A stretch of 63,072 nucleotides of DNA, the filler included, from Octopus bimaculoides (Eukaryota), in NCBI RefSeq assembly GCF_001194135.2. It is 10 parts of 9 records of this genome, joined end to end, with 100 filler letters (N's around TTAATTAATTAA, not from the genome) between each part and the next. Parts side by side here need not be neighbours in the genome. Positions count along the whole stretch, not along the records: positions 29,251 to 42,050 come from NC_068989.1; 9 more parts are not named here. One strand, given 5' to 3'. This document shows positions 40,101 through 40,351 of this stretch, piece after piece. Position 1 is the stretch's first letter, and each line of letters opens with the position of its first letter. Made by a program: the position numbers and the translations under genes. A model generated the notes under the pieces. The model saw only the letters and a list, made by a program, of their open reading frames with translations. It ran no database searches and was not told the DNA's origin.

Positions 40101-40351
40101 TTAATATTCTGCTCTGGTTCTCATTCTCGTCATAACGAAATGGCGTTTCGTTAGTTTAACTTGTGTGTTTTTATCTGTTGCTAATTGCAGGAAGTAATTA
40201 TCAAGTTCTTCGTTGGAATTCATTGACTGTCTTTTTCCCAGATAATGCCATACACAACACTCGCAGTGAGCTCGGGCATCAATCGAAGAGGGACACATTT
40301 TACATTTGCAATTTTCTTCAGTTTTCACGTCTTGCACAAACAAAGAGATTC
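40101..40351 (-). CDS. Putative terminal exon of a cysteine-rich amidated neuropeptide precursor
   Basis: Long polypyrimidine tract plus ttcattgcag acceptor (phase 1). Translates GISLFVQDVKT-EENCKCKMCPSSIDARAHCECCVWHYL-GKR-QSMNSNEELDNYFLQLATDKNTQVKLT-KR-HFVMTRMRTRAEY*. Six Cys, a GKR amidation/cleavage site, an acidic spacer and a second KR. No start exon found. Confidence 0.65.

Follow-up and report, generated by a model that had tools for sequence, protein, structure and literature searches.

The question raised by this locus is what product, if any, is encoded at positions 40101-40351 on the minus strand of a stretch of Octopus bimaculoides DNA. The window, by which we mean the whole stretch that was analysed, is 63,072 nucleotides long and was joined from 10 parts of nine records of assembly GCF_001194135.2; the locus lies in the part taken from NC_068989.1 (positions 29,251 to 42,050). 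An earlier note on the window had read these positions as an exon of a precursor for a secreted, amidated peptide with six cysteines, an interpretation that is supported by splicing, by selection and by conservation in a family. The exon probably encodes most of a 103-residue secretory prepropeptide, likely the precursor of a neuropeptide or peptide hormone of an apparently unnamed molluscan family.

The exon is spliced and transcribed

Positions 40101-40351 (minus strand) form the second and last coding exon of an Octopus gene that has two coding exons. The exon and its borders comprise the following features.

40352-40395, minus strand: polypyrimidine tract and 3' splice acceptor; the tract, at about 40395-40354, ends in CAG, and the AG is at 40353-40352 (RNA contigs)
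40101-40351, minus strand: coding part of exon 2, residues 21-103 of the 103-residue precursor (translation, 100% identical to the annotated protein)
39871-40100, minus strand: 3' untranslated region (UTR), minimum extent (X16 RNA contig from 40352 to 39871, X1 contig to 39951)

Exon 2 is read in phase 1 from 40351, where the G of exon 1 and the following GA make up a Gly codon, and is closed by a TAA stop at 40103-40101 on the minus strand. The frame is (G)ISLFVQDVKT-EENCKCKMCPSSIDARAHCECCVWHYL-GKR-QSMNSNEELDNYFLQLATDKNTQVKLT-KR-HFVMTRMRTRAEY-stop, and its translation matches, at 100% identity, residues 21-103 of P0001, the protein deposited as CAI9727903.1 for O. vulgaris and as XP_036362128.1 (LOC118764974) for O. 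sinensis. The databases annotate this 103-residue protein just as "hypothetical" or "uncharacterized". The acceptor closes a phase-1 intron of about 23 kb, and exon 1 is outside the supplied piece. The gene occupies about 23.6 kb of the O. vulgaris chromosome, on which exon 1, with its GT donor, was located at L001 10002-10062, about 23 kb upstream of exon 2. Exon 1 begins with the ATG start and reads atg aaa tca aac gtt atg gaa aag ctg tat aaa cag tta tat ttc ttc tgc ttt ctt ttc g|gtgagt, its end in the chromosome being ...aaacagttatatttcttctgctttcttttcg|gtgagt. It encodes MKSNVMEKLYKQLYFFCFLF plus one base before the GT donor and the intron is therefore in phase 1.

The splice junction was seen directly in RNA contigs of the runs X1, X5, X10, X13 and X16. 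In each of them the match to the genome ends exactly at 40352 and is followed by GAAAAGAAAGCAGAAGAAATATAACTGTTT, a sequence exactly reverse-complementary to the end of exon 1; because the last base of exon 1 is G, contig and genome overlap by one base at the junction. X1, X5, X10 and X13 are from organism A (four studies) and X16 is from organism B, the window's own species, so that the contigs cover five runs and five studies in two Octopus species. The junction contigs attain depths of 70 and 110, and on the intron side none of the five runs that bear the junction has any coverage. The acceptor at 40352/40351, which the earlier note had proposed, is indeed used, since the RNA contigs join exon 2 to an upstream phase-1 exon carrying the start of a signal peptide. 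Downstream of the stop codon, AATAAA motifs are found in or near the 3' UTR at 39957-39952, 39949-39944 and 39865-39860. These results confirm 40101-40351 as a genuine, spliced and transcribed coding exon.

Organization of the precursor

The part of the precursor encoded by exon 2 can be divided into four segments.

40320-40351, minus strand: C-terminal third of the signal peptide, (G)ISLFVQDVKT (by inspection)
40239-40319, minus strand: predicted mature 27-residue peptide EENCKCKMCPSSIDARAHCECCVWHYL, with six cysteines in the pattern C-x-C-x2-C-x9-C-x-CC-x5
40230-40238, minus strand: Gly-Lys-Arg, a putative dibasic convertase site with a glycine amide donor (from the sequence; invariant in six of six family members)
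40104-40229, minus strand: C-terminal propeptide, consisting of the acidic spacer QSMNSNEELDNYFLQLATDKNTQVKLT, a second KR and then HFVMTRMRTRAEY

The positions originally proposed for the 27-residue peptide (40319-40239), for GKR (40238-40230) and for the second KR (40148-40143) are all exact. By inspection, the complete signal peptide has MKSNVMEKLYKQ as its n-region, LYFFCFLFGISLFV as its h-region and QDVKT as its c-region. The signal-peptidase site is predicted to be V-K-T|E, after Thr31, and it aligns with the candidate sites V-K-A|D in P0011 of Solemya, V-R-A|D in P0004 and V-R-C|G in P0002, the family members described below. A G-K-R sequence is a signal for cleavage and amidation by the successive action of prohormone convertase, carboxypeptidase E and peptidylglycine alpha-amidating monooxygenase, and its presence predicts a C-terminal Leu-amide in the octopus peptide. 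The C-terminal propeptide is identical among close Octopus species and is unconserved between molluscan classes. The 27-residue peptide is the candidate active product because it is the sole part of the precursor that is conserved across molluscan classes. Judged from the sequence, the generic hallmarks of neuropeptide and peptide hormone precursors are all present: a predicted signal peptide, a short precursor, a conserved peptide flanked by dibasic sites and a glycine amide donor.

Purifying selection on the coding exon

Four close Octopus lineages were compared, namely the window, the O. vulgaris and O. sinensis references, which match organism A, and organisms C and D, which are represented by genomic contigs. 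The two references are identical to each other over the compared region (L001 33361-33781 and L002 29244-29664). Positions 39950-40370 of the window differ from them at three synonymous coding sites, at one intron site and at several 3' UTR sites, together with indels; the piece thus belongs to a third Octopus lineage closely related to them (organism B). Over all four lineages there are five coding differences, each at a third codon position and each synonymous: 40290 (Pro, ccc>cca), 40263 (Cys, tgc>tgt), 40236 (Gly, gga>ggg), 40218 (Asn, aat>aac) and 40212 (Asn, aac>aat). The codon effects were placed by hand, codon i being 40349-3i to 40347-3i. Unlike the coding sequence, the 3' UTR of organism D (about 240 nucleotides) carries seven substitutions and several indels. 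As about three quarters of coding sites are non-synonymous, five synonymous changes out of five should occur by chance about one time in a thousand, by a rough estimate. The comparison shows that the coding exon is under purifying selection.

A conserved molluscan family

A word-indexed protein search returned nothing beyond the octopus protein itself. Relatives were recovered by an exhaustive HMMER scan of 1.84 billion representatives, which gave P0002 (E = 1.4e-6), P0003, P0004 and P0005, and by profile searches, which contributed two more: P0011, deposited as a "hypothetical protein" from the protobranch bivalve Solemya velum, and P0012, a piece of genomic sequence that is an orthologue of P0003. 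Besides Solemya velum, four assemblies contain relatives, one of which is a second Solemya-like sequence. The six aligned members are given below.

Octopus: EENCKCKMCPSSIDARAHCECCVWHYLGKR
P0002: GEGQCVCKMCPQFSTPGAHCGCCVWHYYGKR
P0003: PRSCRCPQCQSFNDSIRRCECCFYHLQGKR
P0005: PDSCRCKQCDHIMTVQLHCQCCIYHLHGKR
P0004: DEDCSCPGSFCAGVDDPHQRCECCVYVVLGKR
P0011, Solemya: DKDCSCPGSYCAGVTDPFQRCECCVYVVLGKR

The invariant columns of this alignment are the initiator Met, the six cysteines and Gly-Lys-Arg, and nothing else. All six members have the same layout, in which a hydrophobic signal sequence is followed directly by C-x-C-x2(4)-C-x9-C-x-CC-x5-GKR, and the tail after the cysteine doublet takes the form CC-[VFI]-[WY]-[HV]-x-x. 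The precursors are 103-152 residues long, with further dibasic sites in most members. The cysteine spacing and the GKR site, on whose conservation the earlier reading depended, are therefore kept both in close Octopus species, where the changes are synonymous only, and in other molluscs. On the sequence evidence, the gene is a member of a conserved molluscan family in which both cephalopods and bivalves are represented.

P0002 has CKMCP and CCVWHY in common with the octopus protein and is present in dozens of RNA contigs of about 1 kb; its source is probably another cephalopod. A 172-residue form of P0002 is an artefact of stop-codon read-through, and the actual open reading frame (ORF; L003 466-984) is the 138-residue form P0006. 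P0012 is the mere tail of an exon, and the full ORF of 130 residues, which starts at 2845 (L011 2845-3237), holds the cysteine-rich peptide. Both P0005 and P0012 are distorted by prokaryote-style gene calls made on eukaryotic contigs.

The position of the intron was compared in four genomic loci, those of octopus, Solemya (L010), L007 and L011, the last two being contigs from ENA. In all four a phase-1 intron lies 13-14 codons before the first cysteine. The distance is 14 codons in octopus. In Solemya, exon 1 (MQCMGRQLWMSLLYTA plus c|gtaagt) and exon 2 (…ttccag|tt act gtg…) are separated by a gap of 35.7 kb, and the intron, again in phase 1, is 13 codons before the first cysteine. The same phase and the same distance of 13 codons were found at the acceptors of L007 (tttcatttcag|tt cat tca…) and L011 (ttcttttcag|tg agt tcg…). 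Common descent of these genes is supported by this shared position and phase of an intron inside the signal peptide. The shared intron also reveals that the "N-terminus" of P0005 was produced by a prokaryotic gene caller that read through the intron; the first 18 or so residues derive from intron sequence that precedes the acceptor at about 8056 (L007 8001-8060). In the same contig as the P0003-type orthologue, about 2.5 kb upstream of it, a Tc1/mariner-type transposase gene (DDE_3, Transposase_1 and HTH) occupies L011 1-298.

Structure prediction and database searches

The precursor was modelled with AlphaFold2 using the six-sequence alignment. The mean predicted local distance difference test score (pLDDT) was 60; the model has a signal-peptide helix, a peptide region with values of 64-73 and a disordered C-terminal part with values below 50. 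When the peptide was modelled alone, the mean pLDDT was 77 and residues 15-26 were helical. According to the model of the peptide alone, C-x-CC would lie on a C-terminal helix and C-x-C-x2-C on an N-terminal loop. Foldseek found no match in the PDB for either the full-precursor model or the peptide-alone model.

Sequence searches likewise returned no known domain. A Pfam scan of the precursor gave chance matches only (Hint and ETRAMP, E about 0.1); nothing resembling a transposable element was found in Pfam, a match of that kind being one that the earlier note had asked to be looked for. A PDB sequence search with the family profile gave chance matches only, to flavivirus NS5 (E at least 0.5). 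In the open full-text corpus, the family motifs (CCVWHY, CECCVY, CKMCP and others) were found only in insulin A chains and in unrelated proteins. The same motifs detected no family member in the searchable parts of the precursor collections that accompany PMC8557429 and PMC3890597 as supplements, and they were absent from the main text of the scallop survey and from the novel precursor families of the oyster survey. Neither the accession numbers of the 103-residue protein nor the SRA run identifiers are mentioned in any of the searchable papers. The family is apparently unnamed in the open literature and the catalogues that were searched.

Comparison with known cysteine-rich peptides

The possibility was considered that the peptide belongs to a cysteine-rich family that already has a name. 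The closest likeness in architecture is to trissin, a six-cysteine neuropeptide of arthropods and the ligand of the Drosophila trissin receptor. Trissin has 27 residues, comes straight after the signal peptide of a precursor that is 88-117 residues long (PMC7179676) and has the sequence LSCDSCGRECxxxCGTRNFRTCCFNYL-OH before RKR (PMC7179676; see also PMC9387463). The octopus peptide, too, has 27 residues and immediately adjoins the signal peptide, its precursor being 103 residues long. Both have a C-C-C-C-CC framework, and the octopus end, CC-V-W-H-Y-L, compares with CC-F-N-Y-L in trissin, each being followed by a basic site. However, the cysteine spacing is C-x2-C-x3-C-x3-C-x7-CC-x4 in trissin and C-x-C-x2-C-x9-C-x-CC-x5 in octopus, with loops of 2/3/3/7/0 and 1/2/9/1/0, respectively. 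Furthermore, the C-terminus of trissin is free (RKR), in contrast to the molluscan family, where every member has GKR and the tail is one residue longer. When the family was aligned by hhalign with a trissin profile built from only three mature peptides, the probability was 2.3% and the last nine columns were aligned. The resemblance to trissin that had been remarked on earlier thus holds for the architecture and breaks down in loop lengths, amidation and profile similarity, and an assignment to trissin was rejected.

Other families were less similar. CCWamide, or agatoxin-like peptide, of protostomes is likewise rich in cysteine and cut from a short precursor, and its amidated C-terminal end contains an aromatic residue. 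However, it has eight cysteines, lies at the C-terminus of its precursor after a spacer and an intron-split cleavage site, and ends in W-amide; it was rejected because the octopus peptide has six cysteines and directly follows the signal peptide, within which the intron is located. The CLCCY precursors are likewise small, secreted, cysteine-rich and lophotrochozoan, with a CC doublet. Their pattern in the published Phoronis, Terebratalia and bivalve sequences, C-x6-C-x6-CC-x4-C-...-C-x-C after a KR site, is inhibitor-cystine-knot-like and lacks GKR, and it excludes an assignment. Clionin is molluscan, secreted and cysteine-rich, but it is about 110-120 residues long, with ACLxCxxCF and further cysteines scattered along the chain and without C-x-CC-x5-GKR; the published alignment of the clionins of C. 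gigas, Aplysia, Sepia and Tritonia does not fit. Lophotrochozoan CCRFamide (Platynereis, Lottia) resembles the octopus product in being an amidated, cysteine-containing peptide near the signal peptide, but its four cysteines are spaced C-x3-C-x12-C-x4-C and its long tail ends in RF-GKR, so that it has neither cysteine spacing nor motif in common with the octopus family. The arthropod-type CCRF-amide end is present in none of the six family members, in which five residues follow CC. HFAamide was compared with published sequences and rejected as well. The decision of the earlier note to leave the peptide unassigned was sound, as clionin, CLCCY and lophotrochozoan CCRFamide, the families it had named beside trissin, do not fit. 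The C-E-C-C-[VF] sequence of the family alignment is also the start of lophotrochozoan insulin A-chain cores (…ICECCV/F…), which is probably a coincidence, although it makes insulins turn up in motif searches.

Proposed processing of the precursor and alternative explanations

From these features we infer the cleavage sites, amidation, disulfides and signalling role of the following scheme. The signal peptide, which the phase-1 intron splits into residues 1-20 on exon 1 and 21-31 on exon 2, would be removed after Thr31. Prohormone convertase would then cut after Lys-Arg at residues 60-61, a carboxypeptidase would strip the basic residues, and peptidylglycine alpha-amidating monooxygenase would turn Gly59 into a C-terminal amide. 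The product, EENCKCKMCPSSIDARAHCECCVWHYL-NH2, may be a compact molecule with three disulfides, in which the N-terminal C-x-C-x2-C loop is stapled to the C-x-CC helix, and it would act as a neuropeptide or peptide hormone on some receptor.

Several observations weigh against this scheme. Neural or endocrine expression is presumed, and in three deep raw-read RNA runs of the window's own species (X22-X24) the exon is nearly devoid of reads, so that expression of the gene is restricted to a tissue or a stage. The cleavages, the amidation and the disulfides are predictions from the sequence, and the AlphaFold models reach only moderate confidence (pLDDT 60 and 77 for precursor and peptide, respectively). 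The residue to be amidated differs among the members (L, Y, Q or H), which is unusual for short amides that bind G protein-coupled receptors (GPCRs), although less so for structured cysteine-rich peptides. Out of billions of proteins the searches yielded only about six members, which leaves the phyletic breadth of the family poorly sampled. Finally, antimicrobial peptides and toxins are also found among cysteine-rich secreted peptides.

The last point leads to the main rival, according to which the product is not an endogenous signal but a secreted peptide of defence or offence, either an antimicrobial one or a toxin-like one made in a salivary or venom gland. Such peptides are small, cysteine-rich and secreted, a disulfide-stapled helix is common in defensin-like and toxin peptides, and cephalopod salivary glands express many short secreted proteins with no assigned function (bioRxiv 10.64898/2026.02.02.703354). 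In the octopus precursor, however, conservation is highest in the mature peptide, which strong purifying selection maintains, none of the five changes being non-synonymous. In toxins and antimicrobial peptides the pattern is usually the reverse. The invariant glycine with its dibasic amidation signal and the further dibasic sites are hallmarks of prohormones, the family and its intron position are found in a bivalve, which is not venomous, and there are no tandem paralogues within the 12.8-kb piece. Furthermore, the cephalopod venom study lists no mimics of trissin or CCRFamide among its matches (bioRxiv 10.64898/2026.02.02.703354). A role in defence or offence is for these reasons considered unlikely. 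Less probable still, and in our view rather doubtful, is that the family is the lophotrochozoan counterpart of trissin, a diverged and amidated ligand of the orphan molluscan trissin-type GPCRs such as O. vulgaris XP_029641905. Peptide length, position, precursor size, cysteine framework and the Y-L end are shared with trissin, orthologues of the trissin receptor exist in molluscs, including O. vulgaris, with no ligand identified (PMC8557429), and a mollusc trissin ligand was reported in no paper found. Receptors of the trissin type are reportedly lacking in annelids and phoronids, and the table of PMC8557429 lists none for Lottia. Against a trissin-type ligand stand the different loop lengths, which require that one cysteine shift from the N-terminal to the C-terminal cluster, the non-amidated end of trissin (RKR) as opposed to the constant GKR of the family, and the low hhalign probability, obtained over nine columns.

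Two further explanations have very little left in their favour. Searches of published precursor sets with CECCV and CECCF match only insulin-like A chains, for example IVCECCVHQCSYGEMRGYC, which might suggest a degenerate fragment of the insulin superfamily. An A chain, however, needs CC-x3-C-x8-C and must be accompanied by a B chain (C-x11-C) and a C peptide, which the octopus peptide is without; it ends with GKR five residues past CC, its N-terminal part is C-x-C-x2-C, and no insulin match was found in Pfam. The missing A-chain and B-chain cysteines effectively refute an insulin origin, which we regard as highly improbable. The "hypothetical protein" could also be an annotation artefact, that is, a chance ORF or a non-coding exon, considering that it has no other name in the databases and no Pfam domain. 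Yet the exon is spliced and abundant in RNA contigs, its divergence is synonymous only, and the six cysteines, GKR and the intron position are kept across molluscan classes; this pattern of conservation refutes the artefact, the probability of which is close to nil. The precursor of a neuropeptide or peptide hormone is retained as the probable identity of the gene product.

Genomic surroundings

The earlier note had also described the setting of the exon as unique and free of repeats. The depth table bears this out for the exon, which is in low-copy sequence between high-copy repeats. Very high-copy repeats flank it at 38976-39451, 39690-39808, 40523-40879 and 41594-42050, with a word depth in genomic contigs of up to about 1,000,000. 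Microsatellites of the (CATA)n/(TACA)n type are present at 39072-39144, 39350-39415 and 40828-40876. The Rfam matches of the mir-297 and mir-466 type in these regions (39074-39410 and 40823-40875) were dismissed as microsatellite artefacts, as they score 30-50 bits and the gathering thresholds are 85-101. At about 40523-40600 the minus strand resembles the head of a tRNA-derived short interspersed nuclear element, where ARAGORN detected no intact tRNA. Farther away, two overlapping ORFs of 142 and 122 residues are found at 35827-36544 (plus strand); next to them, at about 36780-37000, is a run of N's that is an assembly gap inside the piece. These ORFs have no Pfam match and may be the remnant of a degraded mobile element.

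Significance of the family

If the product is a lineage-restricted secreted peptide, the value of the finding would be a better annotation of a "hypothetical protein". The fixed loops of the amidated C-x-C-x2-C-x9-C-x-CC pattern add a new cysteine framework to the natural disulfide-rich scaffolds. If the peptide were in truth a trissin-type ligand, the trissin system would be extended from arthropods to molluscs and the octopus receptor would gain its ligand. To our knowledge, the catalogues of molluscan and other lophotrochozoan neuropeptides are regarded as nearly complete. Several conserved GPCRs are nevertheless still orphan, among them the trissin-type, kisspeptin-type, ETH-type and proctolin-type receptors (PMC8557429). 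Since it occurs in cephalopods and in a protobranch bivalve, the family would have been present in an early conchiferan ancestor, and as a conserved, constrained and apparently unnamed family it offers a concrete ligand candidate to synthesise and screen.

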